From Amphiscolops sp. MND2022 (Eukaryota), in contig OZ076410.1 of assembly GCA_964187785.1 (NCBI GenBank), positions 33,294,001-33,358,000 of the forward strand: a stretch of DNA of 64,000 bases, read 5' to 3'. Each line of letters begins with the position of its first letter. Position 1 is the stretch's first letter. Position numbers and translations under genes: made by a program. Shown here in pieces: positions 1 to 46,110 of the stretch. The notes below the pieces were generated by a model that was not told the origin of the DNA, did no database searches, and was given only the letters and a program-made list of their open reading frames with translations.

Positions 1-26
1 AAAGCAAGACAAAAATATTACTACCC

Positions 27-1482
27 ATGTATGGCAAATACATCAAAAAATGGGTCAGTAATTGCCAAATTTGCATCCAAACGAAACGCATCAACAATGA
101 TCTCCTTAGGACAGAACTTCTTAACTGTCCGGAATGGGATCTCGGTCCGGAAGACATTTTGCAAATGGACATTTTACCAAACCTTCCCCCTAGTGGAGGC
201 TATGACCATATTATCACAGCAATAGATGTCTTCTCAAAATACTTGTTTGCCTACCCTGTAACTCGTATTACTGCAACAGCAGTATCAAGGGTTATCATGG
301 ACATCTTATGCAAACATACATACCTTCCAACAACGATAATCACGGATTTAGGCACTCAATTCAATGCACAAGTAACTCACGAAGTTGCGGCAGTACTCGG
401 AATTGAAATGAAACACGCAACAATGAAACATGCCCAAACAATAGGACTCCTTGAGAGAACACATGCATCAGTGAAAATGCACCTAAAAGCCGCAACAGGC
501 GAATTCAGGAACAACTGGCATAAAGATCTCCCCTCGGCAGTCCTCAATCACAACACCACATACCATGCATCACTCGGTTGTGAACCTTCACGAGTCTTCC
601 ATGGTAGGATACCACACAATATCCTAGACTACAAACTTGGATACAATCCTAACCCACGATACCAACCGCAAGCAGATGTGGCGGAAGAAATTCAAAAACG
701 CATGAAAATCCTTCTGGATCAAACCAAAAAAGAACATCATGCAATCATATCTCAAAAACAAAGCTTACTATGACCGCAAAGCGAAAGCAGCTCCGCTCGA
801 AACAACGGATTACTGCTACATTCTTAACCCAAAAGCTGATACTCAAGCGACAAAAATACCATTCCGAGATTTCAGATGGTGTGGGCCATATAAAGTAGAA
901 AAAGTGCTCCCTAACAATAACTACATTGTCCGGAGACTTGGGACTAACAAAACGCAACTGCGACACAGGATTCGTCTACGGAAATTCACTCCGCAAGCGC
1001 CCTTAGCAGACATTTTTATCCGAGAAACCGATTGGCAAAAAGATGACCAAATGCCTATAACAAATGATGACCTTTATGCCCAATCATGGAACACGAACTT
1101 CGGTTCAAATCCTTTTGACGATGGTCCTTCAGAATATTCATTAAATACTGAAGACACAGAATACATTCCAATTCAAATGCCCGAAGGAAACTGCCCACCC
1201 TCCCCAGGATCTTCAAAAAATAGTGGGGGGAGCCCAATGGAACAGACCACTGAACCGGATGAAAACCATGAAAATGAAAAACCACAACAAATCATTGAAG
1301 ATGATCAAAGTACCCAAAAAACCCAAAAAGATGCAAATAATTCACTTGATGATGATACCCAAAAAACCCCAGAAAATCCACAAAATACCCCATCACAAGA
1401 AGAACCCATAAATACCCGTGGTGATAAATACAACTTACGTCCTAACCCTAACCCAAACTACTCAGACACATACAGATATTAA
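27..1482 (+). pseudogene. pol: pol C-terminus: integrase (CxxC, rve core, GPY/F module), frameshifted near 725-740
   Basis: NCQIC; GPEDILQMDILPNLP...AIDVFSKY...IITDLGTQF...GLLERTH (D,D-35-E); overlapping ORF 739-1482 continues YYDRKAKA...WCGPYKVEKV. Confidence 0.92.
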
Positions 1483-1655
1483 TGAAAACAATTCTCAGAC
1501 AAAACTTTATCTTATACTGGTTTTATACTCCCAGCATTTTTCTCTTTTCTTGCACACTCAATAATAATAAAGCAAGACAAACGAAATAAAACCATAACAA
1601 ATGTCTCCTATGAGACGAAAACAAAAGAAACAAAGTCTACAGAAGCAAGACTGCT

Positions 1656-4600
1656 TTAGTTCTTCTTAGCTTTTCCACTCGACCCTTTTGTTTTTCTGGT
1701 ACCATCATTTCCTCCGTCGGCGCAGCGGGATAGAGACACTGTAGCCTTCCCAAGAACTGGCTGAGAATCTGGGGAACTCGTAGTGCTGGATACTCCACTC
1801 AAAACAGAAACATCGGGGTCGACAGAGAAAGGATCTTCTTCTCGTCTCACAACGGCACTCTTGTATGCACTTTCTAATTTAGTCTGAAATCTGACTCGTC
1901 TTGGTCCGCTACCTTTTAAAAAGTTCCAAACAGAAAAATTGCGATCTTCCAATAAATCACGTCCTCGCCCGATAAGACGAAACACACGGCTGAGCGATCG
2001 AGGGTCTCGGAAGAGACTTGACACGTTTGGGACAGTCTTGTAGGCCAGCTGGATACTCGAAATGCATGAATGAAATACCTCTTCGTCGGGTCCCAATTCC
2101 GGCATGGGTACAACAAATTGACTAGTGATCTTCGCTTTCGGTGGCAAACACAGACAGGAATACTTAAATACCCGATGTAGCTCTGGTCGGCAATGTAATT
2201 CATAACAGGAACAAAGGAATTCAAACCAACTATCTGGCCGGCAGACCTGACTCGAACGAAATTTCGTAACCAAAGACCTGTATTGACTCACAGCCTTTGT
2301 TTTATCACTAACTGTGATCCAGCCATGGGAGGAGAAGTAGGTCGTCAGCATCTCAATCGCAGGCAGATAATTTTTCTCTTCACCATCAAGCATCATGGCA
2401 GAATCGAAACTGGATAAACATCTAATTAAATCCGAAGTCGCAATCTTATGCTGCAACAGTATTCGACAAAACGCTTTATAGAAGGCAATGGACTGTTCGA
2501 TGAATTTACTGGGCCTTGGCAGCTTGCTGGGAGTTACTAACTCATGAAAATCAGAGTTCAGAACGAATTCATCACAGCTCTTGAAAGGGAGTCCAGGCTG
2601 GGTTAAATCGAGCTTCAGATAACTGTCCCAGTCGGAAACATTGCCAAGGATACTATCTGGAAGTATACTTTGGAGCTGAGAATAAACGAATACAGCAAAC
2701 TGGTTAAACAGGCGAAATCCAGCTTCAAATCCAGTTGGTGCTTCAGAAAATGACGAGTTGTCTGTAACACAAATAGCAAAACATCCAAAAACGATAAAAG
2801 CAAAACATGAGACACACCTTGTTAGGGTGCCACCAACTCCACTACGCTGATAGTACGGCATATACTTATAGCATATGCGGCATCCTACGGTTTTAGCTGT
2901 TTTACGATCTACCCTTCACCAAAATACGCGGCATCATGCGGAAACAGGGGCGCCGCATACGCGGTATCATGCGGAAAAAGGGTGACGTATATACGGCATC
3001 CCGCGGCTTTGGTGTGTTATTCAGAGAAGCAATTCCTAATGATAATCGCAAGTCACAGCTGCGCAAAGAAATTACAACGAAAAGCCATACTACTGATATA
3101 AAAGCACAATGAAAACAAGTGATAAAAGAATACTAACAGTGATCCAAAACACAGCGAATGACGAAAAGCCGGGCCAGGTACGCCGTATCGAGCCGGAAAC
3201 ATTCGTCTAACGTACTGGGCTAAAAAACCGAAAAGGTTAATCAACAAATTGGTTAATCAACAAATTGGCTACAAAAGGAACCCGAAAACGAAATATTACC
3301 TCACGCATGTGGTAACGGAAGGTCGGTAACCGGGAAACCCGATACAGGTGATCCAACACCCTGTCCCAGTGTGCAGATAACAGGGCTATGATGGATGAGG
3401 CCTCCTCTAGAGTGTATGTTAAGTGTGTTACGCACTAAAAAGAGGGGTACCATGACGCTAGAAGTTGAAAGTGCATTTTGAGACAAAGTAAAACCGAAAA
3501 GTGTACCTTGTGTAATACGGGTATTGACTGCAACCACTCCTGGTCCAACGCGGTTCTCAGTTTCATGAGAAAGAAATCCAATATCGTCCTGAAGTCGTGT
3601 CGCTCAAGAATCCGGGATGTTGGCATGGATAAACATTTTTCTAACTCAGTAACTCCAAACCAATTGACAATCATTGGGCAAGTTTTCCCTGACAGTGACC
3701 GAGTAAGGCAAGTTGCTAACCTCTCATCAAAATTAACGAGGCTAAGGCAAGACGGTGGATTCTCTGACAAGCTGAAGTAAGACGAGAGCAAGGAAAGAAG
3801 TCTTTTGGGTAACAATAACCCGCGGGGCCCAGACCCGAGACTAACTTGGTAATAGACGTTCCCAGACCAGAAACTCAGGAAGAGGAAATTTTTGGTAAGA
3901 GAACTCTCATAAGATAGAGAACAAACTCCAGCTGTCCCAGTAGTCACGACACAATAATGCATTAGCTCGCGGAACATATATGTAACGATGGCCTAAACAG
4001 AAGGATAGAATTGTAACCCTCAAAGCATGAGTAGAATAAAAGGGGAATAGAAAAGTACTTACATAAATGCGATGTTGACTCCATTTGTGAGTGGTGATTT
4101 GGGCACTGCTGCCTGGAGATAATCTTGTCATGTCCTCCCAGAGTCCGAGCAGGACATTTATGTGTCCACCATGGCGGAATCCATTCTCGAGAATGCAGAT
4201 TTGAGCCAGAACACTCTCACTCGGGCTGGTAACAGAACTGAATTCAGGCAACCGCTCTTGCCCGACTAATAAACGGCACCCATCTAATTGAGGAGCGATT
4301 GGATGTGCTTCTCTAGCTCTTCGTTTCGCTTCTTGCAGTCCTATTCCCCGCAGTTCATTTTCTTCTTGGTCGAATAGAGGTAACCCAGGAGTTTCTAAGC
4401 GGATCCTATGTTCCTTCGTCAAATGAGCTTCAGTTTTGTAATGAGACAATAATTCCAAAACCCCTCCGCTCATCAAAGACAGCTCTATCTTGCAAACTCG
4501 ACACCACCATTTGTATGGGTTTTTGTTTCTGTCGAGTGGTCCAGTGGCAAAATATTGGACGACAGGATGTTTCTTCAACATGGCTGAAGTTAACGAGTAC

Positions 4601-5383
4601 TTTGGTCTTCGTCTTTTGCCCCGTGCCAACGGAAGTTCTTCAGAACTGGAATGGGGACGCAAATCATCGGGAGGATGTTCTGTTGTTTCACCCTGACTGG
4701 TACTTGTACATCTTGAACTGGTGAGTTCTGAGCCTGCCCAACAACAGTGAGAGTAATGTTTTCTGGAACGTTACGATCTCCCCTCACTAGGGCAGTTTTC
4801 GGGATCTTATCCAATACGCTTGAAAGCGCTAAAACTTCTTGCCGCGTGACAGTAACTTGTTGTATTGTTTCTTCTTCGGGTTCAACACTGTCTCTGGCAT
4901 GTAAGGTACCAGGAATATCTTCATTGGACTCAGGCAGCTCTTCGTCTCTTTCTCTATTTTCCCCTCCTGCCGGGTCAGTCGGCGGATTTCCTTTAGAAGA
5001 AGTATGGGGTTGACCAATATCGGGCCTATCCAACTTTGAACTAGAGGTAGTTGCATCTCGGACCATGTTTATGAATTCTGTGAAACGAGGACAGTTGGTG
5101 GTAAAAGTAACCTGTGGCAGTTCTTCAACGTTCGGCTCAGTGGTGGTTGCCAAAGTCTGATCGTTGTCTTCAGTCACAGTAACATTCTTGTCGGACAAGT
5201 CAATTTCTTCAATGGGTATCTCTGAAGAACCATTAGTAGTATCGTGGATCAAAAGTTGACCTGACCCTGCGGATTCATTTAAACTTGTGGCGAGAACACG
5301 CTCAATCCCTTCGTTACTTCCTGTGGAAGTTTCCTGGATTGGTAAATCTTCGGGAGGATTCTGAGTTGTTGGTGACACAGCTT
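1656..5383 (-). CDS. Spliced antisense gene of element A; degenerate hAT-transposase-like protein (C-x2-C-x16-H-x5-H finger, dead catalytic core, basic tail). Exons ~5383-4063 (one frameshift at ~4600-4770), 3992-3507, 3434-3300, 3219-3138, 2761-1656; 5' end unresolved
   Basis: Four GT..AG introns (4062-3993, 3506-3435, 3299-3220, 3137-2762) are all phase-compatible; WCRVCKIELSLMSGGVLELLSHYKTEAH; homologous to the gene at 21889-26177. Confidence 0.75.
2874..3010. repeat. Cluster 1 of a degenerate TAYGCGGYAYYATGCGGAA motif, ~33-bp period, inside the last intron of the antisense gene
   Basis: catatgcggcatcc, aatacgcggcatcatgcggaa, catacgcggtatcatgcggaa, tatacggcatcccgcgg. Confidence 0.7.
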
Positions 5384-6267
5384 CTAGAGGTGTATAAACT
5401 TTTGTCGGTGATCGTGCTGGTGAAGTTTGAGTCGCTCCCAGGTCAACTGAAACAAGTTCAAATGCTTAAAGCGGAAGCGAAGGCAAAAGAATTACAGGAA
5501 GTAGCATTTGAATTAACTCTGAAACCGGACGCGGTTAAAGATCACAAAGCTACTTCCGCCCCAAAAAATCAACGTGTGACAAAATTATTTTCACACTAAA
5601 ATTAAACAAATCGACTATTGTGAATTAGTTACTTCATTTTGCAAGTCTGGCCAGCTTTGCACGATGATCCCTCAACCAAAACAAATTCTACTATAAATCA
5701 AAACTCAAAACAAAAGTTGAACCAACCTGGAGACGTCTTTGTAGGAGATTTGTATCCCCACGATCCTGGCACTCGTCTTGAAATTTGATCCTTTCTGGAT
5801 TTTTACCGACTAGTAGATTCCATCCCGAATGAAGGATAACAACGATACAAAACAATGAGCAGTAATCCGACGCAGAATAAGGAAGCACAATTTTAACGAA
5901 AGTTTAGAAGAAGTTTCGGGAGTGCAGTATTCAAGATAAAATTGTTGAAGAAACTGACTATGACTACGACTATACTTTTTCCAAGAATAAGCTGAAAAGA
6001 CTGTAATCGAAGAGTTGAAAGAAATGCTTAATTCACAAGAAATTGAAAAGGCGTGGCGTACAAGTAAAGGCAAAAGAGCAAAATGTGACAGATATCGTAC
6101 ACGGAAATAGAGCGGTTCTCAAATCTGATTGGTCGATTAAATGTCAATCACTTCTGCCAGAGTGAAAGATAACATAATTTACGTATACGACTGACTCATC
6201 AACCATTCTCATTACAAGCGAGAGTGAACAAAGAGCACATGGCTTTTATACAGTATTGTAATATATT

Positions 6268-19861: not shown

Positions 19862-19964
19862 CAAGGAAACAATTAATAAAAGCTGGCGATCATCGGCAAA
19901 AAGAACACAATGGCAATCGCGTAAAAGTTGACCGACACCCTTTATGTATATTAAAGCCAGGATG

Positions 19965-20992
19965 CGTCGGAACGTGCATCAAGTTCATTTGATGTGGTAA
20001 TGGTAGGGGCGTTCCCTTCTCTATCATTAGAGGATGACTTTTCATTAGACGATATTTTCTCGGTTAGAGCTAGAACTAGATTCGTCAGTTCACTTATTTG
20101 TCTGTTCATTTCCGTAAATCTCTGATTTACGGCTTGACGTTCTGACTCGCCAGTGAAATCCAACAGATTTCCGTTGTCGAACTCGTTTATCTGTTCTCTC
20201 GTGAGAACTTCAGGGACACTACTTTCACTTTCGGTATCGCTATGTCGGTCAGGTCGGCACATGTGCGTTTGCTGGTTTTCTGCCACTTGAGATCTGGTAT
20301 TGACCATTTTGAAGAGATATTGGGTTTTTGAGGTCTTATTGAGTAATTGACAGAATGGTTAAGTATTCTAGTGATGAAATTATATCAAACTGAGAGGTAC
20401 GTATTTAGCAAACTGTTCGTCAAACTATCGCAAAATCTTCTGATGGTACAATTTCACTTGGTAGCAATTATGGCGACGTTGGTCACGTGACCACATCAAC
20501 CAATCACATCGCTATTTTCGTTCGCACCTTTGTTAGTAATCGCGCAATAATGTCGCAGCACCAAAATGAAATGTAGTTACGTTGCTATGGTTGCATGACT
20601 CAATTTGTATGATGATGTGGTTGCACTACTAGCATCATATATGTGAATGGTTAATGTATATAATTGTTTACAGGACTGACTGCACTGAAACGAAATCTGA
20701 TGATGGCGTATCAGCCACATTACTTTCTTTTCTAATTAAAATTCACGAAATTAATTTAATTGACATACGTAACTAATGTGTGAAATATGGGGGATAATAG
20801 TAAAGTTATTTAGGGACTGAATAGAAATGATGCTTTTTAGCAGATTCTAGTTCGAGTTTTATGATTTGGTTGACTTCACCACATTCTTTCCTTTCATCAT
20901 CATCCTTTTACTGTTTGCATTTGTTTTGAGCTCAGGTATGCAGGATGGTTGACCACATCCTTGTTTGATTTTTTCATGCGTCACGCATGACA
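19965..20992 (-). repeat. 3' LTR of element C (contains a copy of the gag start; ORF 20307-19951)
   Basis: Direct repeat of 33869-34896. Confidence 0.93.
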
Positions 20993-21888
20993 CTCCGGGT
21001 CTTTTTTTTGAAGAGAACGTGTGGTTGGAATGGTGAATTGTCTCGTTCGGTTGGTTGGAAGATCGGATGCGGCATGCTAGTTAGCAAAGTTGGAATTGCT
21101 GTATTCGTTAATTGGATTGAGTGCTCGTGTTGTTATAGCGACCACATTAGTAGTGGCGAGTTGACTTTGTGGTTGGAAATAGACAGTGATGTTGTTATAG
21201 CAACCACATTGACAGCGGCGGATTGATTTCGTTGCAGGAAATTGTCGGTTTGATTTCCGCTAGCTACTAGTTCGTCTCGGTTCGGCAATCGATCAGCGTG
21301 TTGACTGATCCACTTCGGTTGAGAGTAAATGTAGAGTCGATGTGGCGAGAGTAGCCACGTCATCCAAGCGTGCGCGTTGTTTGCAGAGAGAGAGTTAGCG
21401 TAAGAATGAATTTGCCGGAAATCAACAACGTGGCAGCGTAATATAATTACTCGGCTTATTCGGTAACTGTTCGGAAGTAAGATGCAGTGGAAATGTCGTG
21501 CGCTTCGTAAACAAATCTTCGTCGATGCCAAAACCGAGAAACAAATCTTTCTCCATTATATTCATTGGTGCGATTCTTCAGCAGTTCAGTTCGGCCGCGG
21601 TTTACTGAGTGACTGTATCCACTAAGCAAGTAGGATATAGATAGGATAAGCCAGGGAGTCGTGTTGTGATTTTGACAAATTTTTCGGGTAGGTGTTGACC
21701 GTTTTAGAGGAAATATTAGTAGACGGGTGACGGGAATTCGGTTGTCCCTTTGAAATTTTCGGGTAGTAACTTTGCATAGATAATGTGGGTGATCAGGCCA
21801 CATGATCCTTAGAAGTTAATTTGAATCTCAGTAAATCGCAAACGACTGTATGCTTCCAGATTGTTACCCTTGATTTTATTCTTTTCAG

Positions 21889-24800
21889 ACTTGCTTGTTA
21901 TTGCCGATATGAGTTCAACGCCTCAAGTGGAGACGTCTCAGGCTGCGACTGATGTGGCTTCTGTTGTGTTAGCTGCGGAGGGAGTGTTCACTGAGTTAGC
22001 ACAGTTAAGTTTTTCTTCGGTGGGCAGTGAATTAACAGCTGCTGTGGAGGAGACTCTGTCAGGAGAGCGTCTAGGAATTTGTTGCCGTTTCGCTGGGAAA
22101 GTGACTGCTGCCAATAAAGAAGTAGCCAACACGTTATTAGAGATCGCTCTATCGAGTGAATTCCGTGAGTACCCTCAATTTCCAATATTTCGTTGTTCTT
22201 TTTCTTTTCGAAGTAGTAACCAGGGGAGGTTATCTTCCTTCAGAGCATCCTGAATTATGATATGCTAGTATGTGGTTTGCACGGTACTGGCATTGTGGCA
22301 TGTACTTCCCGGGATCAAATGCTCTGGGTAACTCATGTGGTAGCTAAATAGGCATTATTGTGCTTTTAGAAGAATTGTCACTCGTAGAGATTGTGAGTTT
22401 GCTCCGGAGACTGTTAGCTTCGAAACGGAGTATTGCTGCCAGTGGTGCTACTGAACTAACTGCTGTGGAGGATCGGCTCAGTTCTGTCCTCGGTGATGAG
22501 CGAGGTACGTAGTTGATTGTTATCCATTAGGTTGAATATACTTCCAGTCGTAGTTCACTGTTAGGATTGGCGGTATCTTGCATGTAGAATGGTGCACAGC
22601 ATATGGTCAAAATTAAGTTGTGTTGTAGGGACTGTTACAGGCTTGCGTGTAACCATTGCTGAGTTGGAGTCATCCTTTCAGCGGATGACGAAAGAATTGG
22701 CAGAGACTGTCAAAGCGATTATCGATTCCAAAATGGGCGGGCTGGGATCAGTCTGTGCGTTGTCCGTCCAGGAGTTCATCGGAAAGTTGAAAACAGCAAT
22801 GGAGCACTTGGCTGCGTCTTCTGTGCCTGGTGGATCTGTCGAGCAAGCTGTGACAAGTGTGCCGTCAGTGCGGTTGGAAGCACCCGGGAGTCCTTTGGAT
22901 GCCAGTAGTTCACGATCTGTCAGCTTGAGTCAAGTGTCCGATGTTCCGACTGCTTTCGCTGGTGTCCGTTCAGTGCCCCCCTTCGAAAGAGGGGGGTATC
23001 TCCACATCCGCTACTGCTAAACCTGGTAAGAAATCTCAGAAGATCATGGGAGGGGTTTTAGTATTAGCACTTAGGTTAAGGATTACGATTTACGACACAA
23101 GTTTTTTTTTGGAGTTTGCTGTTTTCTATTGTAGGTCGCAAAAAGAAGGTGAAGACGTTGAAGCCGGCCTATTTCGTTTCTGGTGTGGTGGGGACCTTTG
23201 TTGGTTTCCCACTGCATAAGCGCGTAGTCGACGGGTATGCCAGGTGCCTGTTGTGCAAAGTCGACCTCAGCATTGCCGAACGTGGTTTGTCTTCCTTGTG
23301 GGAGCATTGGCGGGGTGTAGAACATACCCGTGCGGAGCAGAAGTTTCGCATCATGATGCAGATGCCGTTACTTGATAAGGCCTGTCGGCCAGTGTCAGCA
23401 GAAGAAGACAGACGGATTCGGCGAGCACGGATGTCTGAACCGCCTGTGTTTTTGGAGTCAGAGCTGAGTCTCAGTGTTGATGAGAGGGTTGCCATTGAAG
23501 AGGCTGAAGCGGTTGCTGGAGGAAAACCTGTTTTGGGCGAGGAGAGCGTTTCATTCCTGTGGTTGAGCCAATTTGTGAGCAATTTCTGTAGTACTACCAC
23601 ATTCAGAGATGTGATGCAAATGGTGGAGTCGTGGCGGGACACCATGAATACGGAACTGCGAGTTGAGTGCCGCACCTTAACCTACACACGATGTCAGGTA
23701 TGTATCTACATAAGTTCATGTCGATTTCTGTTTGTGTGTGATGAGGTCATCTAAGGGTTGTGGCTGTATGTTTGGGTGTGCAACTATGCGGCTATAGTTG
23801 AAATTGTGCAGAAAGAGGTTGATTTTTTTTTGTTTACAGAGTTTGGTTCACTATGGATTGTATCGGTTCGTCGTGGAGCAGTTAGATGAATTGATAGCTC
23901 GTGGTAAAGGCGCGAGTGTCAGTATCCGACGACATGAAGCAGATTGGTTGTGTGAGTGTCATGTGGTGTGCGACTACGCTGTGAAAACAATCGTTCTTGG
24001 TGTGGTGGTCGGCGGGACCGGCTGGGAGAAGCGAATGCTCGATACTGTTGTTCCGGTGTTGTTGAGTCTGCCACATGCTTCTTCTATGAGAGCGTACAGC
24101 ACGGAGTCAGATACCCGCATTGGATACGCGCTAGCAGCTTCAGTCGGGATCGTTGGCCCTTTGGTTGTGGGTCGAGTGACGCAAGTGTGGTTGTTTGACC
24201 TTGTTAGGAAGCACTTTCTTGCTGAGTTCGTGGGTCTGGATCCCCTCAGCGTTCTGGACTATTTGCGTGTTCGACTAGCCTCCGTGGTGCAGGAGAGAGT
24301 TCTGGATCGTTTGCCTCGTTTGAAACAAGTGAGTATTTTGAACTATACATGTATAGTATGTGGTATATCAAAGGACATTTGATCCAATTTTTTTTGGAGA
24401 GGAGGTGTTACTTTGCGGGGTCTACCTTTTTTTCTTGCGTGGATGTTTCTTTTGTTGTTATAGTTTATACTAGTCGGAGGAAGTGATGTGGTTTCGTTGG
24501 CTGCTTTGTGTGCAGAAGTTGTCGAATACTGGAACGACCTTGCAGTCTATTTTGGAACTCATCGCCCCCATGTGACTTCTGAGTTGCGCCTGGTGACTCC
24601 GCTTGAGGGGCAGGTATTTGACGATGCCATGATGCGCCCTCGTTTTGCCGTTCTACGTTTCATTTTGGATTTGTGTTAGTATGGTTTTTTTGTAATTGAG
24701 TTCAGCTAGGATGTTGGTGGCTTTTGTCGACTTAACTCTTTATCCCCCCTTTTTTTCTAAATGGTACGTTCAAACTAATTATGAGCATGGGTTAACGTGT

Positions 24801-26177
24801 GTTGCGTTATGTTTACAGTGGCCGAAACGTGTCCTCGATTTTCTAGGAGCAGCAGTGATAGTAACATGGTTGCTGAGCGTGAACTGTCACAATTCGTTCG
24901 GAGGCTGATGCGTTTAGTGTATCCTGAATCATCCATACCTGCTGAGTATGAAGTGGATTCTCTCCTGAAGCCAGTGGATCGCGATTTCTCTACAATAGAC
25001 GAGAGTCTGTACCAACTGCATTTCAGGTATGACGTATTTCCGGTATGACGTTCGCACACAACTCCCGTTCTTCTACCGGTCAGTGCAGAAATTGTTGGGA
25101 GTGATATGCACAGAGCTTGTGGGGACGTGGCAATGTGGAGCTATTGACCACTTCAGTCTGACTCCTTTCGATCCACTGTTGGTGCATGGTGGGTCTGATG
25201 ATCGCTGTATTGATGCTTTGGTCGGAACCTGTGCTACTCTTTCTCGTTATAATTTAATGAGCGACACCATAGCTGCGAATACCCTGAGACAATATCGGGA
25301 AGTGGCCCAATTTTTCAAAACCAAGTGGACCTTGATTGAAGGCATGCCTGCAGTGGATGATGTAATCACGATGTGGTTCTCGTATCCTTTTTGGTCTCGA
25401 TGTCAAGAGTTGTTGTCAGTGCTGAACCTATTGTTTGGACTTGCAGTTGTCGGAACTTACAACCCTAACTTCAGTGATGAGTTTGGTACTGCTATAGCTG
25501 TTGATACTCAGCGTTCTAGTCTGCATCTTGTCAGGAGTTGGTTTTCGAAGATGTTTGCGGGTCATACCCGTCAATCGCTCACTGGGCTACTACGTGTTTG
25601 TTCTACTAGTGATATGCAAGTGTCCCGATTAACAGATGAGGCGCGGTGCAGGCCTTGGGATCGGTTTATCAAATCAAGTCTGAGTGAAGCTCTCTCTTTG
25701 GGAAATGCTGTATTGACCAATGATCTAACTACTACCTCAACTGTGCCTATTGATGATTATCGATCGAATGTCTTGGCTCAATTGGATCTTGTGGAGGTAT
25801 TGAGTCCCCCACGAGCTGGACGGCGAAGCAGTCCCATTGGTGTCAGTAGTGCTAAGTCAAAAAAGAGTGCACGGAGGCAGATTGATGTGACCTTGGGCAT
25901 TAGTGCGCCGTTTTCCGTTCAGACAGCCCCCAAGAAGAAGAGATCCGCCGTTAAGAATCCTAGAGGTGCGAGACGTTGTATGCCTTCAACTAGTCGTGGT
26001 GGTGTCCTTACGAGACAGTCAGTTGGGCGTAGAACAGGAGGGATTCCCCGAGGAACGAAACACTTGCAGTTAGCTAATGTTGTTGGCTCCGATGACGATT
26101 CAGCTAGTGAAGTAGTTGTGAGCGGGAGGAAACGACTGAGCTGTATTCAAATGGATTCGTCTGGATCAGGCAATTAA
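21889..26177 (+). CDS. Seven-exon antisense gene of element C; ~1,130-aa degenerate hAT-transposase-like protein. Exons 21889(ATG 21909)-22164, 22370-22504, 22629-23025, 23135-23697, 23840-24328, 24464-24674, 24819-26177; two frame lesions (~22976-22996 homopolymers; 16-bp duplication 25020-25051)
   Basis: Six GT..AG introns with phases 1,1,1,0,0,1 all compatible; ARCLLCKVDLSIAERGLSSLWEHWRGVEH finger; SLAALCAEVVEYWNDLAVYF resembles the hAT RWLSL..AV.R.LE.W..L..YF block. Confidence 0.78.
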
Positions 26178-27750: not shown

Positions 27751-30700
27751 TTACCAAAGGCTTGTTGATTTGCGTTGCATGAATTTTAAGAGTGCGGGCT
27801 TTGCTTGCAGTTCATGAACAAGAAAGTTGTCAAACGTTTTAGGCACGGGTGCCTCGCGAAGGCTGTATCGGGTAATGTTATTTCGTGTAATTGGTTGGGG
27901 TGTTTCGGCAGATGATGCGGTCGATTCCGCATCATTATTTGGATGGCTTTGTTGCTCAGGCAGTTGATCAGAAGACGGTGTGTCCATTTCATTTGATTGA
28001 ATTTCAGCTTCAGATCGATGTGTACTGTCGGTGTGGACGGTCTCAGGTAGAGGGTTATCCAGAGGTGGTACCTCATGAACCCTTTTGTGTTCGTAAAAGA
28101 TTGCTCCATGCTCAGAGTCGACTGTGTCAGTTTCATTTGTGTCTAGTTCTACTGTGTTTTCAGCTGGAGGTAGCGTTTCGGATGCAGGTAGATTATCGTT
28201 GAATATTGATTGATCGTCGATTGCGTCAGGATCACTATAGTGTCGTGATGCATCGTCGTGTATGTCTTCGATGGGATCGTGTGGTACGAATGGGCGAAGC
28301 CGCATTCTATGTACGCACTGTGTTCGGAAAGTACCAATTTTTCTGATGATATAGTTTGACTGTGACAGGACTTTAATTACCTTGTAAGGTCCTTCCCATT
28401 TGAAAGAATTGAAAGGGATTTTTTTGGATTGCTGGCCAATTTTGGGGTTCAGTAAAAAGACAAAGTCGTTTACTTTTAAAGGTGACGCTTCCGCTTTCCT
28501 GTCATAGTACTACTTGTATTTATGGAAAGCACGGATTATGTTGGTGTGTGTCTCTTTGAATTTCGCATTCAGGTTATCCACTAACGTCTTCGCGTCAACA
28601 GCGTTTCGAGGCGGATTGAGGGGGTTGCTGAACTTCAGATCTAGTGCATTATATGGTACTCGACCGTGGAAGACTTCAGTTGGAGAGCACTTCAGAGTCT
28701 GGTGGTAAGTCGTGTTATGTGCCATCACAGCGAGATTGACGTATCGGTCCCATTGTGGGCGGTCCACGGAAACGTTTATTTTCAGGACTTGTTTCCAGCG
28801 TTGATGTGATCTCTCGATCATCCCAATTGTTTGGGCATGTTTAATCGTTGCGTGGGAGACTTTGATCCCGGCTTTGTTCATCAGTTCAGTTATGACTTCG
28901 GACGTGAATGCAGAGCCTTTGTCGGTGATAATGTGTTTCGGTACATATGCATGTTTTGTGAAAATGTCTAGTAGAGCATTGACGACGGATTTCGTGTCAG
29001 GTTTGCGAATCGGGATAGCAAACAGATAACGTGAAAAATAGTCACAGGCCATCAGAATGTGTGAGTACCCATTAGATCGCGGCAACGCACCTACGAGATC
29101 GATTTCAAGAACATCCTCAGGACCGTTGCAGGGGTCATAAATTGGTTCGAGTGGAGGTATCAGAGTGTTTGGTTTTGCAGGTTTCGTTTTAATACATTCT
29201 TGGCAGTTGTTTACAAACTCTTGGACCTTTTCGGTTAAGTTTGGGACGTAGTACCTTTTCCTTAGTTCACTTAGCATTTTGGAAGCGCCAGGGTGTCCCT
29301 GCATGGGGTCGCCATGCATCGTCCTGATTATGGCTTCCGTAGTTTCTGGAGGAACTACAATTTGTCGGTAAGCTAGTTTTCGTACGTTGTCAAAAAACTG
29401 CCTGTACAACACGTTGTTCACTACTTCAAGTCTTTTACGGTTCTTGAAAAGTTTTTGGAAAAAGGTACTTGTAAAGTTCACTTGGTTCGGAGGGGTTTCC
29501 TGGACGGTAAGAATCCTAATTACACGTTGAACGTCACTGTTTTCGCCTTGAGCCTTAACAATTTCTGAAGTCCCCGAAGGGCATACCTGATTTACCATAT
29601 GAACCTGGTTCTGTTGGTAGAATCGGGTGAAGAAAAGGGTCGGGTCGGAAGGCGTCACAAATGGTTGTATCTGGGACCTGATCTCACTGATGCGTCTATC
29701 GTACTGTTCCCCGTCTTCGTGGTGTTGCCGTGGGAACATTTCCAGTAGCGTTTGCATCGTCGGATTTGATGATGTGGTCGCACCAGGTACATCGTGGTCT
29801 TCTGGGATGTACTCCTCCTCGTCATCGTCTTGTTTAGGCGTTTTGGATGCCAGGTCGATTTCAACTTTAAAGACTGGTATTTCGTCGTGGAGTTTGAGGT
29901 GGATCCTGTCTTTCGGTCTAATGTCAATTCTGGACAGGTAGTCGGCTGCTGGGTTTTCGACGCCAGGTACATGGGCCAGGACGAAGTCGAATTGGAGGGC
30001 CTGGTCGCAGTAGTTCCACAGTTTCGGAGGTATTCGCTTTGACTGGAAAAATCTTGTGAGGGCTTTGTTGTCAGTCATGACAATTGTTGGCTTCGTCACT
30101 CCCCACAAGATATGAGCGAATTCGTCGAAGGCGAAGTGCATGGCCAGGAACTCTTTTGCATACATCGTGATTGACATCTGGCCCTCAGTAAACCTTTGTG
30201 AACCAAAGGCTACTGGTGCGTATGACTTCGTTGGTCCATCATTCGTCTCGGTGTAATCCTCGATCAAGTGAACGTATCCAGCTGCATGCTCGCTAGCATC
30301 GCACATGATCACGAGCTGTTTGTCCGGAAGTGGTAGTCGCAGGGACATCTTGGCTGCATTTGCGAGGTTCTCATTGATGTCGAACATGGCATCTTTGTGG
30401 ACTTGAGTTAGTTCGAATTTGACGTCTTTCTGCAGGAGTTTGTAGAGTGGTACAAGTTTTTCAGCTAGGCATGGGATGTATTGGCGGTAGAACTGGACGA
30501 ATCCAATGTACCGTTGCAAGGACTTCACAGACGTTGGTAGTTTGATGTTTTTCAAGAACCTGTCAATTTTTTCCTCGATGGGAGCAACTCCCTTGGAGGT
30601 GATGCTTCGTCCCAGAAATTCTATCTCGGGGTGTCCGAAAGCGCATTTACCCATTGACAGTTTCAGGCCAGCTTGTCTGATTTTGATGAACACAGCCTCA

Positions 30701-32697
30701 ATATTGTCGACGAGCTCTTCGACATTGTTGGCTGCAATGCCGATGTCGTCGACGTATTGGGCACATTTGTCAGCCTTGACCAAGGGGTCCAAGTACTCTC
30801 GAACAGTACTGTTGAAGGCTGATAGTGATCGGTTCAATCCTTGGGCTAGTCTGAGGTAGGCGAACGTCCTACTTCCAAAGTTGAAAGCGAGTAACTGGAC
30901 TGACTGTTCATCTGCCATCTGCAAGCAGTGATATGCTTGTGAACAGTCAAGTTTGCAGAAGTATCGCTTTCCTGCCATGTGCTGCGCTGCATCTGCCATC
31001 GTCGTCACCGGATGATTGTGTTGATTGTAGTCGTTCTTCAGTAGGTGATTGATTCTTCTCAGATCTACGAGGATTTTAAGCTTCCCATTCGGCTTGCGTT
31101 GGGCGAAGATGGGTGATGAGTACTTGCTGTACGGCAATGTTGTGATTATGCCGTACTCCTGCATCAACGCCAATTCAACGAGTAAGTCGTCCTTCAGGTT
31201 CGTCGGTGTGGGTAAGCTTTGGGCATAGACTGGTTCGTCGTGTTTAGGAGTCAACTTTATCTTGAATTCGGTGTTGATTCCTATGTCCAGTCTATGTCTG
31301 GCGAAGATGTCATGGTACTTGACCAATAGATCCTCAATTTGTTGCTTCTCGTGAGGGTTCAGTATTGATTGTTCCCACTGGGAAGTTGCCAGAAATTCAT
31401 GCCGTTGTTCTTCGCTTGCTGTTGGATCCAGTTTCTCCTCTGCCCTGAGTTTGACGATTTCGTCATGGATTCGTTTTTCAATCCTGTTGAGTTTTGATGG
31501 GTCGTCACAAGTCTCAGGGGTAGGGTACCATCGTCTATCTGATTTGGTAGTCGGATCCTGGAAGATTTGGTTCAAGACAGCTTCAGCATCATCTGGGTAC
31601 TGTGAAATCAGGTGTAGTTGGTGATTGGTCATCGGTTGAAGGTTGTTAGCTTGCTTCGGTGTCATTATCTTGAATGATGCTACCGGTGTACCCACATTGA
31701 TGGTGATTTGGTAGTCGAGTGGGTTTGTGATCTGGACATGAGTCCGCCCCTCCTGGGTCTCGCTGAGAGCCGGAGAAACCAACAGGTGTGAGCGTCTTTC
31801 GAACGCTGGTAGTCCTTCGACAGTGCCAGTGATGTCACCTAGATCGCGTTCAATCTTCACTGGGACGAACACTTGTTGGTTGGGTTGGATCACAGTCTTC
31901 TGGGTTGTCTTCAGTTCTAGTAGTTTGTTCTTGAATTTCCCGTTGACTGATCGCAGTTGGAGGGTGATGTCCGGGAATTAGACGATGTTGTTGGCCAGGT
32001 CTAGCGTAACGGAGTATTTTTTGAAGAAAGACATTCCTATAAGTACGTTCCCTATCGTCGGGAGGACCATGAATGTTTCTTCAAATATTTTGCCGCCGAT
32101 GAAGAATCGAAGCAGGACTTGCTTCTTGACTGGGACGATGTTTCCGTTGGCAATCTGCACTTTGAACTCCGGGGCAGGGAGTTCCTGGAGGAGGGCGGCT
32201 GGGTGGGCTGCAAGGATGCGGCGGAGTTCCGCTTCTGAGAGAGCACTCTGGATTGCTCCCGTGTCAAGTAGGCCGAAGTTTTCGTATTCTCGGAATTGGA
32301 GTGGTACGTAGAGCATCCTGTCCTTTTTATTGAGTTGGAGGGTGGCACTCAACTGGCGTATTTCGTACTTCGGCTTCTTCTGTTGGTTTTGTGGTTTTGG
32401 CGATGTGGTTCGTTTGTCATCATTTGGTTGGTCAGGCAGTGTGCATTCTGAACTCGGCTGTTGGATGTTGTGGACTTCGGGTCTTCGCTTGGTCTCCTTT
32501 GGTTTAATGGTGTAGTTGTCAGTTGAATGTCTTGTGATGACAAAGTTAGTAGTCTCCTTAGTGTAAGTTGGAGGACGGGACTGCCACCCCGTATGGTTTC
32601 CAGTATGTAGTCGAGTCTGAGGAGTAGTTTGTTGGTGTTGGTTTAGTAGCGCACTTTTGTATGTTTGAGGAGGATGACGTGGCTTTAGAAGTTTTTT
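27751..32697 (-). pseudogene. pol: pol of element C: protease, RT, RNase H, integrase with GPY module; in-frame stops at ~31978 and ~28510
   Basis: LLDTGAIQS; YFCKLDCSQAY; YVDD; MCDASEHAAG; MHGDPMQGHPG...CQEC; LEIDLVGAL...ITDKGSAF...GMIERSH; WEGPYKV. Confidence 0.95.
32691..32697 (-). promoter_or_regulatory. -1 ribosomal frameshift slippery heptamer A AAA AAC at the gag/pol junction of element C
   Basis: gag ends CCA AAA AAC TTC TAA; the -1 frame is open from here into the protease ORF. Confidence 0.75.
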
Positions 32698-33855
32698 GGA
32701 TCTTCTACGTCATCGTGTCGTTCTGTTTCCTCAGCATTTTCGGTGTCATCGTTGGGGTTGTGGGACATCTCATTGGCGTTGTAGACCCTGTTGTTGGTCT
32801 GTTTGAAGTCCCTTCTAAATTGTCGGTTTTCCTCGGTCGACTGCTTAGGATACGGGACGCTGCGGTAGGCTGATGTCGCAGTATTCCTATAGTAGCAATC
32901 TCGGGCGGAGTGTCCCACTTTGCCACAGATTTGGCATACAAGTTTGGCGTTGTATTTCGGCCTGATCTCTTGAGGTTGGGCTGGTTGTTGCTGGTTTTGG
33001 CCCTGGGGTTTGGTTGGTGCTTCCTCCCGGAGGCGTTTCCTGCACTCAGCCCACTTGTGACCATGTATTCCGCAGTGGCGACATTGGCCATCAAATTTTC
33101 GTTTTGTCTCCCTGGGTTGCTGGGTTTGGACGTTAGATGTCTGAGGTGTGGTTACATTCGGCTGGGGTGCGCTTATCTGATTGAATGGTTGCGCATTGGT
33201 TGCGTTAGGAATGAGCTGCGCATATTGACATCTGCGCTGCACAAATGTCCTGATCTCCTCCATCGATGCAACGTGTTTGCCTGCCATGGCCAAATCGTTT
33301 TGCATTTGGACTGGGAGTTTCGCAAATAGAAACGTCTCTGTAATATCACTGGACTTGTCCCCAAATGCCTGCTTTGCGACCTTTTTGAACTTGTTGAGGA
33401 AGTCATTGAAGGTCTCTGCTGTAGGGTCGTAGCGCATTTGGTCAAATTTGTATTTGGCCACTTCCTTCAAATCTTCTTTTGCGTATTCCTTCTTGCAGTA
33501 ACGCAGTACTTGGGCCAGTGTCGTCTGGTTCGTTATTTTCAGCGACTGCCAAAATTCAATGGCATCGTCGCGTAACAAGCTCTGGAAATATGTCAGTTTC
33601 TGTTCTTCTGACAATTTGTGTTGGTGTGGCCTGAGGTGGTTGAGCAGCAGGTGCTCAAACTCGTTCTACTTTTCCCGGTTTCCGCGGAATAGTGGAACTT
33701 GTGTGTGCAATATTTTTGGATGTTGCACCGTGTCCGTCATCGTGTCCCTCAGATGATGGATTTCAGTGACAATGTCATCGTACTGCTGGGCGGATGACTG
33801 AGGGTATTGTGAGGTGGATTGTCGTGGTGGGTTCGGTAGGTAGTTGGTCGTTGGA

Positions 33856-33868: not shown

Positions 33869-34896
33869 TGTCGGAACGTGCATCAAGTTCATTTGATGTG
33901 GTAATGTTAGGGGCGTTCCCTTCTCTATCATTAGAGGATGACTTTTCATTAGACGATATTTTCTCGGTTAGAGCTAGAACTAGATTCGTCAGTTCACTTA
34001 TTTGTCTGTTCATTTCCGTAAATCTCTGATTTACGGCTTGGCGTTCTGACTCGCCACTGAAATCCAACAGATTTCCATTGTCGAACTCGTTTATCTGTTC
34101 TCTCGTGAGAACTTCAGGGACACTACTTTCACGTTCGGTATCGCTATGTCGGTCAGGTCGGCACATGTGCGTTCGCTGGTTTTCTGCCACTTGAGATCTG
34201 GTATTGACCATTTTGAAGAGATATTGGGTTTTTGAGGTTTTATTGAGTAATTGAGAGAATGGTTAAGTATTCTAGTGATGAAATTATATCAAACTGAGAG
34301 GTACGTATTTAGCAAACTGTTCGTAAAACTATCGCAAAATCTTCTGATGGTACAATTTCACTTGGTAGCAATTATGGCGACGTTGGTCACGTGACCACAT
34401 CAACCAATCACATCGCTATTTTCGTTCGCACCTTTGTTAGTAATCGCGCAATATTGTCGCAGCACCAAAATGAAATGTAGTTACGTTGCTATGGTTGCAT
34501 GACTCAATTTGTATGATGATGTGGTTGCACTACTAGCATCATATATGTGAATGGTTAATGTATATAATTGTTTACAGGACTGACTGCACTGAAACGAAAT
34601 CTGATGATGGCGTATCAGCCACATTACTTTCACTTCTAATTAAAATTCACGAAATTAATTTAAATGACATACGTAACTAATATGTGAAATATGGGGGATA
34701 ATAGTAAAGTTATTTAGGGACTGAATAGAAATGAGGCTTTTTAGCAGATTCTAGTTCGAGTTTTATGATGTGGTTGACTTCACCACATTCTTTCCTTTCA
34801 TCATCATCCTTTTACTGTTTGCATTTGTTTTGAGTTCAGGTATGCAGGATGGTTGACCACATCCTTGTTTGATATTTTCATGCGTCAGGCATGACA
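33869..34896 (-). repeat. 5' LTR of element C
   Basis: TGTCATGC...TTCCGACA, direct repeat of 19965-20992. Confidence 0.93.
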
Positions 34897-36670
34897 GGGT
34901 GCATCACGTAGATTCCCCTCTGGTACAACAAAAGTAATTGTGCGAGCTTTGGATAGTAAATTATTCATTCTAACACTTTGGGTTGGTTCTTTTTCAGCGA
35001 TGTGATTCGATTAGGTGAAAAGGGCTATTGATATTTTCCAGCTTCACCAATAGTTTATCGTGTAGAGCTGTATCGAAATCCTTGTATTTGTCAAGTAACT
35101 TGATATGAAAAGCAGCCACTGTCTTTGTATCGATATACAAGATCAATAATTTCAAAATGATGGCTGGTATTTTTTTACCGCGAACAAAGTCGGGTTGAAA
35201 AGGAGATAACTGACTTCTAATTCCCTCATACGGATAACCAAAAACGATTTACTCGAACATAAAAACTAGTTTCGGGAGAGTGCTAGTAGTACAGTAGTTT
35301 TCAATTCAATGCAGAAATCCAGGCTTGCGAGACATGCGAATTGGCGTTACCCAGAATTGTTTCCTTCGGCCTGGCTAGCTTTTCAATTCAAATATACCAG
35401 CGAACAGGTGATAAACGTGTTGAGTAAGAGTTTGACACCTATCTTTGAAAAATACTAAGTTACCTACATCATTCCGAGCGAAAAACGACTAAGATAGAAA
35501 GATGTCTGGGTGACTACAGGTTGACTGTGAAGTAGTAGATGCAGGGAGTGCTGTTGAGCGTTTAATAGAACTTCAAGAGACTTTTTTGGAGATTGTTTGG
35601 ACCTTATTTGGAGATACTGTTTGAAACATTTCCTTTTAGCTTTTTTTCTCTGATTTAGCGTCAAATGCATAGTATGTGATGCTTAGCAATCAAAGTACAT
35701 GAGTTTATTCGGATGTTTAGTGCAAATAGTAGCATTGACAGACAGATGAAGAAAAGCAAACCTACAGTTGAGATAGACCTTTTTGTAGGAAGACATTGAA
35801 AACCTTTTCGTAAGAAATGAAATTGTTAAAATCACAAAAGGTTGCATTGAAAGCAATTTGGCCAAAAACTTCTCATCATTTGTAGTAGTTTCTTTAATGG
35901 ACCAATAATCAAACGAAGTGAAAAACTGTTCTGGAAAGTGATCCAAAAACACCTCGGAAATTTTGTATAACTGGACTCGTATGAATCATTTATGAAAAGA
36001 CCTGAGGTGTTGCCTGAAGCATGAGTAATGAAGCAATGTCTCTGACCATTTCGACGAGCTCAAGGGTTGGAAGGAGTTGGAGACTTCTAGATTTTTGAAA
36101 ATTTGTAGTATAAATTGTGTCCCAATTGATACATGGATAGTTGAAATCACCAGAAACGAAGAATTGTTTCTGATAATTTAATTTACATTTGGTGATGGTG
36201 AAACAATGTCAATGTCATAGGAGGTGTGGGGGCGAATTCTCCTCTCAAAATTGATCTGGGCTTGGCAGTTTGTAGACGATACCGTCTTATTTTCAACTTT
36301 AGCATCGATGCTCTATGATTTTAGTACAGATATACTCAATCTCAAATGTCAAGTTGTAGATCTAAAATCAAACGGTGTCTGCTGATATTCCCATTAGTGA
36401 TCGTCACAAGCAATTCTTTCAGCTCGGTGCTTTTTGATAACCCGTACTGTCAACCAAGGGAAATCCATCGGTGGTCATCGGTGGACCACCAATGGCCATC
36501 GGTGGGGGGGAAATTAGCTTACGTGGAGGCTTTCCCACCGGTGGTGGCTTTCCCATCGGTGGAAAATTCGAAAATTTTCAAAGTGAAAATTTCGTTCAAC
36601 ATTTCTAGCAACTGAATGTTGGTACACGAAATACCTTGAGACGATATTCCCAACCTTAATACATCAAACT

Positions 36671-43950: not shown

Positions 43951-44695
43951 TATAACAGCCTTTTCTTATAGTATGAAATTATCTTCTTCGTATGGGTTCG
44001 CTGACTGTTATGATAATTTGGAGTTCAGTAATTTAAAATTACTAAGGCTTTAGGACTACCGTAAGAGAGAAATCTTGAGTGAAAGAGAAAAAGTTTTTTT
44101 TGCTTTTTGGGGAAGAATTTAAATTAAAATGAAATCAGAGTTAAGAGATGAAACAAAGTTTTAAATACTTTTACAAGTTTACAAACTAACATATTGGGTG
44201 GACTATGGGTGGCTGAGTTGGAGTTCTGAATTTGTTTCTTCTTCAGTTGATGGTTGTTGTCTTCTGGTTTGTAGCTTCTCCAATTGTTGAATGATTAGAT
44301 ATCGATTTTTATTTTTGTTAAACAAGATTAATAAACGGCATGAACACGATAAAACGGGTTCGAAAGAACAAGATTAAGCTCGCAGAACTCAAAATCTGCA
44401 AATCTGCAATTAATTACACTAGGCTCTGGATAAGTCCAGATAATTGAACAAAAACGTAATTAAATGGGGATCGGAGTAATTGGACAAGATTTAAATGCGG
44501 GGTGTACAAAATACTGTATAAAACACGTTGTAGATCTATCTGTGTAATTATGTGACTGGTTTTGTACTGATAAGCAAATTTGTATGTAACTTAGAAACAT
44601 GAAATGTTTTAAGTGCTTTCTTGTTTTGTTTTGTTGCTCTGGCTTTTGTTTACTAGGGGCCGTCTTTGTTTTCGTGTTACCGCTTGCTTGTCACA
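43951..44695 (-). repeat. 3' LTR of element E (TGTGACA...TGTTATA)
   Basis: Direct repeat of 55680-56425. Confidence 0.95.
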
Positions 44696-44728
44696 CCACT
44701 TCCTTCTTTCTGAAATTGCGTCTCGCAA

Positions 44729-45718
44729 TTATAGATCCATGAACTCGTGAAGATTTCGTAGAAACGGGTCGCAACGGCGACATGTCCGTAGACCAATTTC
44801 GTTTCGTTGTATTCCAGGAAGGCCACAACAAGCATAGACTTCCTTTAACGTGGGATCGAGGAAGATCCGTTTAGCTTCCTTGACAAACGGTATGTATTTG
44901 CTGGCCGTGGTTGTGGCAGCTTTCTTTTTGTCGGGATGTAGTGTATGTACCAGCACGCGGTAGTTTTCCTGGATAATCTCGGCATAAGACGATGGGTTGC
45001 AACCGAGCAGATTGAACAACAAATTATCAGGGGCATCTTCAGGCTCAGGTTGTAATGGTAGTTTTGTAATATGGTGAGCAAGCATCCTTTGTAGAACGGG
45101 GACTTGGCATTGGAAGGCAGCTAAATTCCGGAGCGTGCTGAGTTCTTCAGTGAGCTCTAAAGTCCGTTGCAATAAGGACTCATTCTCCGCTGTAAGGGCG
45201 GACAGGCGTTTTTGGAGTGCTTCGTTAGCTGCCTCTAGCTCTTTGGTAGTCTCCAGTTGCTCACAAAGGACGTCCATGGTCAACGAAGTTTCGCGACGAG
45301 CATCCTCAAATGCTTGATTCAAAGTAGTAACATCATCGAAGCGTTTTGTTAGGAACGCTGCATACTCGTCAGTGTCGACGCAGCATTGAGTACCGGGGTC
45401 AGCGGAATCCGGCCAAACACGGGGAGGGGTTGGCTCACAGAGGCAGCTTGGGGTCGGCTCGTCAACCATGAGACAAGCATCTTGGCTTGCTGGAGGTAAC
45501 ACGCAAATGGCTGTTGATGGGCGCATGAAGCTGCGCTGGTTAGGAGTAGCGTCCACTCGTCGTAGGACAACAGTCCCACTGTGGGGATTAACACGTAGGA
45601 CAGTGTATTCACGTTCGTCCAGAATCTGCACGGTGTCGCCAGGACTGATGAAGGCGATTTCCCAGAACAGGTGTATAGATTTGCTCCTGCACGGCGCTTG
45701 GCGGGGAACCTTTAACAT
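44729..45718 (-). CDS. Intact 329-aa accessory ORF: N-terminal beta-barrel-like segment, coiled coil, C-terminal DnaJ/J-domain with HPD (~45029-44821), CxxC tail
   Basis: LFNLLGCNPSSYAEIIQENYRVLVHTLHPDKKKAATTTASKYIPFVKEAKRIFLDPTLKEVYACCG follows the four-helix J-domain pattern. Confidence 0.8.
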   Translation of the reverse strand: MLKVPRQAPCRSKSIHLFWEIAFISPGDTVQILDEREYTVLRVNPHSGTVVLRRVDATPNQRSFMRPSTAICVLPPASQDACLMVDEPTPSCLCEPTPPRVWPDSADPGTQCCVDTDEYAAFLTKRFDDVTTLNQAFEDARRETSLTMDVLCEQLETTKELEAANEALQKRLSALTAENESLLQRTLELTEELSTLRNLAAFQCQVPVLQRMLAHHITKLPLQPEPEDAPDNLLFNLLGCNPSSYAEIIQENYRVLVHTLHPDKKKAATTTASKYIPFVKEAKRIFLDPTLKEVYACCGLPGIQRNEIGLRTCRRCDPFLRNLHEFMDL

Positions 45719-45905
45719 TACAAAAGATTAAAAGAGACCGATTAGGGTTTTATGTGACAATTTAAAGTGTAAAAAGGGGGGGTTTTGACGACTGTATGAT
45801 GGAAACTGAGATCTTGAGCTACAGAATAATTAAAGCTTTATTTGCGAGAGACAATTCACGGTTTTATTTTGTAGACTGGACACATAGGTATGGACAAGAA
45901 TTAGG

Positions 45906-46098
45906 GCACGGACACGTGCATTGACTAGGCACAACACGGAAACGTGTGGAGAGGGCACGGAAACGTGCAAGGTGAGGACTACACGGAAACGTGTATGTTA
46001 GATAACACATTTTTTTTGGGCACGGAGACGTGCAGAAAAGGGGCAGAGATAAGTCTGCGTTAGTGTCCATCCAAATAAAACGGGGCACGGATACGTGC
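45906..46098. repeat. Six copies of (G/A)CACG-GANA-CGTG(C/T) dyad between env and the J-domain ORF
   Basis: Copies at 45906, 45934, 45955, 45980, 46020, 46085; outer pair is G-C in four and A-T in two. Confidence 0.85.
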
Positions 46099-46110
46099 AC
46101 AAGGTGGTGA

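Follow-up and report, generated by a model that had tools for sequence, protein, structure and literature searches.

A 64,000-nt stretch of DNA from Amphiscolops sp. MND2022 (assembly GCA_964187785.1, contig OZ076410.1, positions 33,294,001 to 33,358,000 of the forward strand; hereafter the window) contains a Ty3/Gypsy retrotransposon, element C, which carries an intron-bearing gene in antisense orientation to its own gag and pol. The antisense gene lies on the plus strand between pol and the 3' long terminal repeat (LTR) of element C and comprises seven exons and six phase-consistent GT..AG introns, which together give about 1,133 codons. The coordinates of all features are listed in Table 1.

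The LTRs of element C were detected by self-BLAST of the window as two direct repeats of 1027 bp with 98.15% identity. The primer-binding site (PBS), with TGG at its start, lies one base past the 5' LTR; the 3' LTR is abutted by a purine run, the polypurine tract (PPT), so that element C has the LTR pair with PBS and PPT that is expected of Ty3/Gypsy elements (Metaviridae). It also has the CCHC knuckle in gag and the order reverse transcriptase (RT), RNase H and integrase in pol, where a single open reading frame (ORF) holds the Pfam domains RVT_1 (266-428), RT_RNaseH (523-630), Integrase_H2C2 (847-905) and rve (924-1016). On the basis of the LTR pair, gag, the Gypsy-order pol, the PBS and the purine run, element C is classed as a complete Ty3/Gypsy element, 14.9 kb long and lying on the minus strand. 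The distance from its pol stop to its 3' LTR is unusually long (7.5 kb). The LTR ends are TG...AC, not the canonical TG...CA, and the hexamers beside the LTRs, GGATGC and GGGTGC (window 19960-19990 and 34875-34905), resemble a target-site duplication of 6 bp in which one base differs. An acidic Ser/Thr/Pro-rich ORF of 184 aa without a Pfam match (window 27751-28305, minus strand) is located just downstream of the pol stop and may be a C-terminal extension of pol or a further small sense ORF.

Table 1. Positions of element C, its antisense gene and the antisense gene of element A in the window.
Feature	Position	Strand	Description
Element A antisense gene	1656..5383	-	second Gypsy family; plus-strand element, truncated by the window start (window 1-5400)
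3' LTR of element C	19966..20992	-	direct repeat of 1027 bp; purine-rich tract just inside
Region upstream of antisense gene	20993..21908	+	putative antisense promoter and 5' untranslated region; holds the PPT beside the LTR; identity of 78-81% with three of the four diverged subfamily copies and of 53% with D2
Exon 1	21909..22164	+	ATG at 21909; variable N-terminal region; donor GT in 10/10 copies; open in 6/6 sister copies
Exon 2	22370..22504	+	open in 10/10 compared copies; GT..AG conserved
Exon 3	22629..23025	+	window copy carries a frame break near 22977
Exon 4	23135..23697	+	basic patch, then zinc finger (23245-23325), then linker
Exon 5	23840..24328	+	RNase H-like core, hAT-like by shape (predicted model)
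Exon 6	24464..24674	+	most conserved exon; ends at the GTTAGT donor
Exon 7	24819..26177	+	all-alpha domain, then basic disordered tail; stop codon 26175-26177
pol of element C	28510..31893	-	RT, RNase H, integrase; 1127 aa; convergent with the antisense gene
gag of element C	32685..33614	-	Pfam zf-CCHC (CCHC knuckle); weak DUF1759 and Retrotrans_gag matches
5' LTR of element C	33870..34896	-	direct repeat; PBS next on the minus strand

The six introns of the antisense gene have the phases 1, 1, 1, 0, 0 and 1, and the unusual donor of intron 6, GTTAGT, is present in all copies compared. In exon 7, ATTAAA at 26173 overlaps the stop codon. The window copy contains two frame breaks, one in exon 3 and the other in exon 7 at 25024-25033, where it falls in a 16-nt tandem duplication (window 25020-25051, two copies, 93% match in Tandem Repeats Finder). 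All seven exons were found to be open in the proposed phases in each of the six sister copies sampled, giving 3402 nt or 1133 codons plus a stop codon. All six differ from the window copy in the length of exon 3 and are open there, and the same difference was seen in public DNA contigs. Since the sister copies are fully open, both frame breaks are private to the window copy. The earlier note on this DNA, which was made from the letters and their ORFs, had linked ORF fragments through six GT..AG introns into about 1,130 codons with only two lesions, and both parts of that description were borne out by the reading of the sequence and by the open sister copies.

The antisense gene is not confined to the window. 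Its DNA, introns included, is present in at least 28 near-full genome copies at 94-99% identity, with further copies at about 79-81%. In the six close copies sampled, colinearity with element C extends over the full 14.9 kb, LTRs included, and four diverged copies (D1-D4, about 80% identical) show the same order of LTR, antisense gene, pol, gag and LTR. No terminal inverted repeats (TIRs) were found around the gene, where only inverted pairs of 11-23 nt at chance level occur, none of them at the gene boundaries; thus neither the TIRs nor the 8-bp target-site duplication that would flank a hAT transposon were recognized. The antisense gene is therefore a built-in, intron-bearing part of the Gypsy element and not a nested DNA transposon, as had been proposed beforehand together with a search for TIRs and an 8-bp duplication. 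A long gene with its own introns, sitting in the variable region between pol and the LTR where nested insertions are tolerated, might be taken for the passenger of a hAT-like DNA transposon recently inserted into one Gypsy copy. This explanation was rejected on the LTR-to-LTR colinearity of the copies and the lack of flanking TIRs, and it is effectively refuted when it is considered that the gene is colinear in every full copy sampled, in at least 28 genome copies and in the four subfamily copies, and that the same layout recurs in homologues of 45% identity and in a second Gypsy family.

Several mosaic copies were observed in this genome (for example C6:14678080-14686826, C13:24979146-24987990 and C5:22572402-22581240), in which the antisense gene is 96-97% identical to that of the window and the adjacent pol only 83-85%. 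D3 and D4 are mosaics of the reverse kind, with 79% identity in the gene versus 86.5% in pol. The discordant identities of gene and pol suggest recombination between subfamilies, by which gene and pol modules were exchanged.

The conservation of the antisense gene was analyzed by comparing the window copy with D1-D4. All 12 splice dinucleotides are kept in the four copies, the GTTAGT donor included, while the lengths of the introns drift (intron 1 is 205 nt long in the window copy and 264-275 nt in D1-D4). Over about 850 codons of exons 4-7 the ratio of nonsynonymous to synonymous substitution rates (dN/dS) is 0.14-0.17 and the differences lie mostly at third positions; when the same columns were read in the two shifted frames, values of 1.2 and 1.5 were obtained. 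For the same pairs, dN/dS is 0.07-0.14 in pol and 0.11-0.13 in gag. Among the individual exons, exon 4 has a dN/dS of 0.06-0.15 and exon 6, with 87-88% DNA identity to the subfamilies, one of 0.05-0.11. Exons 1-3 evolve faster (dN/dS up to 0.45, and DNA identity of only 53-63% to D3 and D4), exon 1 having values of 0.17-0.18 against D1 and D2. Given the closeness of these values to those of pol and gag, the antisense gene is under purifying selection nearly as strong as that on the core genes. The predicted exon structure is likewise far beyond chance, because the splice dinucleotides are kept, the intron lengths vary and the substitutions fall on third positions. It is common for antisense transcripts of retroelements to function as RNAs, and it could be supposed that the selected product is such an RNA, for instance double-stranded RNA or a source of PIWI-interacting RNA tuning the expression of the element, the long frame being incidental. 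We regard this as very improbable, for dN/dS is low in the proposed frame and exceeds 1 in the others, and the third-position bias, the seven exons open in all sister copies and the splice sites conserved while the sequence and length of the introns drift all argue for selection at the level of the protein.

Homologues of the antisense gene were also found in other public assemblies. In those that are 30-45% identical in exon 5, introns 4 and 5 are GT..AG introns at identical codon boundaries, and one homologue, 45% identical in exon 7, has RT and integrase genes and a gag-like ORF in convergent orientation to it. A HMMER search of 1.84 billion representatives returned 122 relatives of exon 7, all of them unnamed ORF fragments of at most 439 aa. 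In another assembly (L034:3111-8878), a BEL/Pao element was observed between exons 6 and 7 of the homologue, nested in the equivalent of intron 6. Within the window, element A represents a second Gypsy family, its integrase being only 44% identical to that of element C, and it too has a spliced antisense gene, distantly homologous to that of element C and with the same finger. The finger exon of element A matches that of element C with a BLASTP E-value of 3e-7, and its last exon matches a family profile built without element A with an hhalign E-value of 1.2e-5. The match of its exon 5 to the family of element C is not significant (hhalign without A, E 0.35; BLASTP, E 53), so it is by their finger and last exons that the two antisense genes are taken to be homologous. 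The ORFs of element A were also observed to run into GT-initial introns at the same boundaries as exons 4/5 and 5/6 of element C. From the intron positions shared with homologues of 30-45% identity, the homologue linked to RT and integrase, and the gene of element A, the association of the gene with Gypsy elements is an old one. A third LTR element (window 43951-56426) has LTRs of 747 bp with 98.9% identity. Its large ORFs are all minus-strand ones and no ORF on the plus strand reaches 200 aa; such a gene is thus not found in every large Gypsy element here.

The domains of the encoded protein were then considered, with all folding and homology searches made on single exons or ORF pieces. The zinc finger in exon 4 has the pattern C-x2-C-x16-H-x5-H. 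It had been called N-terminal, which was not confirmed, as some 300 residues of the protein precede it. Its second Cys and both His are invariant, element A included, and its first Cys is misaligned in element A and replaced in the decayed copy D2. The ESM Atlas features of the finger exon fall into zf-C2H2_12, zf-BED and FAM200-ZBED5 clusters with scores of 0.86-0.90, which is a lead only, and Pfam zf-BED was unmatched. Exon 5 was modelled from 24 sequences at a low-confidence predicted local distance difference test score (pLDDT 58.8), and the order of its elements (helix, three strands, helix, strand, helices) matches that of an RNase H-like core. The AlphaFold2 model of exon 7 (pLDDT 70.6) consists entirely of helices. 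The tail of exon 7 contains about 20% Lys and Arg and, at 25929-25946, the motif PKKKRS, which is similar to a nuclear localization signal (NLS); together with the basic patch that precedes the finger in exon 4, this would fit a nuclear protein.

The origin of this protein was harder to establish. When the Atlas was searched by shape with exon 5, seven of the ten family rows were hAT (ZBED1_RNase-like, FAM200-ZBED5_RNase-like, DUF4371, Dimer_Tnp_hAT and DBD_Tnp_Hermes), with template modelling (TM) scores by query of 0.36-0.52, and no other transposase superfamily appeared. A Foldseek comparison of exon 5 with the PDB, a kind of check that had been suggested at the outset for the spliced protein, placed six Hermes chains in the top 36 rows, at E-values of 0.06-0.2 that are below significance and at noise level. 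Among the PDB matches, which are tied or weak, Hermes gave the longest alignment (132 of 163 residues) and the highest TM score by query. Exon 7 was matched in AFDB clusters to the C-terminal region of about 300 residues of arthropod proteins, with a probability of 1.0 but a TM score of about 0.35, and one of its AFDB neighbours is named 'HAT C-terminal dimerisation domain-containing'. No meaningful match to the exon 7 model was found in the PDB (by Foldseek and PDB-wide with VIA), among the Swiss-Prot models or in the Atlas, and an Atlas feature search with exon 5 and with an exon 7 homologue gave nothing usable. On all these results an RNase H-like core is likely, and the exon 5 families, the weak Hermes matches, the AFDB neighbour of exon 7 and the leads from the finger exon together give moderate support to a hAT ancestry of the protein, which we consider reasonably probable.

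Taken together, the best overall explanation, which we hold with somewhat better than even confidence, would be a large Gypsy lineage with an intron-bearing antisense accessory gene encoding a hAT-like nuclear DNA-binding factor. Several results weigh against it. No relevant Pfam family was matched by any of the seven ORF pieces at E-values up to 1, nor by any sequence in the alignments of exons 5 and 7 (about 100 homologues) at E-values up to 10, and no relative was found among PDB chains by single-sequence or profile searches. In addition, the only public runs matching the stretch, four in number, are genomic unitigs in which the introns are retained, and their joints lie off the introns and lack GT..AG ends. 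The six junctions have their support from the comparison of copies and homologues. The hAT derivation proposed in the earlier note has moderate support: the structural and feature leads, weak as they are, all point to hAT, and no sequence method detects it. The core could alternatively belong to another DDE superfamily, to a host protein of RNase H-like or ASKHA fold, or to something too diverged to place, with the gene still real and the element's own. This we consider rather unlikely, since the family rows of the Atlas search are mostly hAT-specific and include no other transposase superfamily, Hermes leads the PDB matches in alignment length and TM score, the independent feature and AFDB leads are also to hAT, and the succession of finger, RNase H-like core and all-alpha C-terminal region is the hAT order.

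As to catalysis, the position of the Asp after strand 4 of exon 5 (in STESD) varies among close homologues, which have D, E, A, G or K there, so that a conserved DDE triad was not found at the one position that can be aligned with confidence. The Pfam hAT dimerisation domain PF05699 has no match in 77 family members even at an E-value of 10. In a genome-wide search with PF05699, 150 places were scored from 2215 candidates, none of which was among the listed copies of the antisense gene, and a genome-wide search for DUF4371 returned nothing. Because this Asp varies and the dimerisation domain is undetectable by Pfam, the protein is probably not an active transposase; it was on these two points that the earlier claim of lost catalytic residues and motifs could be checked. 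The PF05699 search also indicated that genuine hAT elements are many in this genome, several matches lying in open frames of 600-700 aa, and possible donors of the ancestor of the antisense gene are thus present in the host genome.

An antisense intron is not recognized in the genomic RNA and hence survives reverse transcription. Under the proposed mechanism, the six introns would be present in the genomic RNA of element C as reverse complements, which the spliceosome cannot remove, and would be copied at every retrotransposition; the presence of the introns in all copies is consistent with this, as had been anticipated. A separate antisense transcript would be made from its own promoter, within or close to the 3' LTR side, and would be polyadenylated at the ATTAAA over the stop codon. 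Once spliced, it would be translated into about 1,133 residues, with a variable helical N-terminal region followed by the basic patch and the C2H2 (BED/SPIN-DOC-like) finger, and then by the putative RNase H-like, hAT-like core, the all-alpha region and the basic tail with its NLS-like motif. The product is predicted to be a nuclear, non-catalytic DNA-binding factor on a dead-transposase scaffold that serves the element. We infer splicing in vivo, the transcription start, nuclear localization and function from the sequence.

The gene is selected through the propagation of the element itself, so the protein must be of help to the element. By analogy with HBZ of human T-cell leukaemia virus type 1 (HTLV-1), its most likely role may be to regulate transcription from the LTR of its own element, or the chromatin of that element. 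It is also possible, but less probable, that the protein serves the element in another way, either as a tether that targets integration by means of the finger and a dimerising transposase scaffold, a role we deem less likely, or in counter-defence against silencing by the host. Dead transposases retain DNA-binding and oligomerisation surfaces, the faster evolution of the N-terminal exons is as expected for an interface in a conflict with the host, and the gene and pol modules have different histories; still, the evidence favours none of these roles over another. Whether an animal Gypsy clade, represented by at least two families and by homologues down to 24-45% identity, has long maintained a class II (hAT) transposase, domesticated as a needed, intron-bearing antisense accessory gene, is in our view an even question. 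If so, it would amount to a 'complex' retrotransposon genome analogous to those of complex retroviruses.

The usual view is that gag and pol suffice for an LTR retrotransposon, and accessory genes mark the complex retroviruses and a few plant lineages. The animal Gypsy lineage described here keeps a gene of seven exons and 1,133 codons under selection nearly as strong as that on pol. It is a natural version of the engineered retrotransposition reporters, in which a backward-facing intron survives reverse transcription, and it indicates that an ordinary spliced gene can belong to a retroelement. Should the hAT ancestry be true, one class of transposons has domesticated the enzyme of another, and the gene would offer a tractable system for studying how a dead transposase serves a retroelement, whether in promoter control, in the targeting of integration or in counter-silencing. 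Genome annotation is affected as well, for genes of this kind will either be mistaken for host genes or be masked along with the repeats.

The closest known arrangement is that of the plant Retand/Tat elements, in which antisense ORFs are located between pol and the 3' LTR and encode a Transposase_28 domain, with products thought to bind DNA (PMC11963269, PMC7264820). As in the plant aORF-3R (Retand/Tat, Grande and RIRE2), the ORF of element C is antisense, lies in a long region between pol and the 3' LTR and is conserved in its lineage, and the proteins are in both cases predicted to be DNA-binding or nuclear. The present gene differs from them in its animal host, in its far larger protein (about 1,133 aa) with a C2H2 finger and a putative RNase H-like, hAT-like core, and in its six conserved spliceosomal introns; the word 'intron' does not occur in the Retand paper or in the review of plant antisense ORFs, the latter calling for a study of spliced transcripts (PMC11963269, PMC7264820). 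Transposase_28 (PF04195, TRP28) was not matched by Pfam in any exon of the antisense gene at E-values up to 1. Among domesticated hAT transposases, the ZBED family, FAM200, the ZBED5/Buster-derived proteins, GTF2IRD2, SPIN-DOC-type proteins and DAYSLEEPER show the order of finger, RNase H-like core and helical C-terminal region that is predicted here, share the apparent loss of catalytic residues and are the families to which the structural and feature leads point. However, these are single-copy host genes, whereas the antisense gene is carried and selected in a multicopy retrotransposon, and its protein is without sequence-detectable hAT domains and is extended at the N-terminus by about 260 aa. 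The Hermes hAT transposase itself (PDB 2BW3, 4D1Q and 8EDG) is matched with scores below significance, and, unlike Hermes, the present gene lacks TIRs, an 8-bp duplication and a conserved catalytic acid after strand 4.

Antisense proteins are also encoded on the minus strand of proviruses, as in HTLV-1 HBZ, HTLV-2 APH-2 and human immunodeficiency virus type 1 ASP. Deltaretroviruses have spliced antisense proteins: HBZ, a bZIP protein, comes from a spliced transcript that starts on the 3' LTR side, is located in the nucleus and regulates viral transcription. The retroviral proteins are of 100-200 aa, have at most one intron and overlap sense genes or sit beside env, whereas the gene of element C has seven exons, a dedicated segment of 4.3 kb and a predicted transposase-like fold. 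The earlier note knew of no such gene in animal Gypsy elements, and in agreement with it no intron-rich transposase-like antisense gene in these elements was found in full-text literature searches and in papers on animal or bivalve elements, the coverage of which is incomplete. The design of an extra gene in antisense orientation is thus known from plants and retroviruses, and its occurrence in animal Gypsy elements is, as far as we could find, apparently new.

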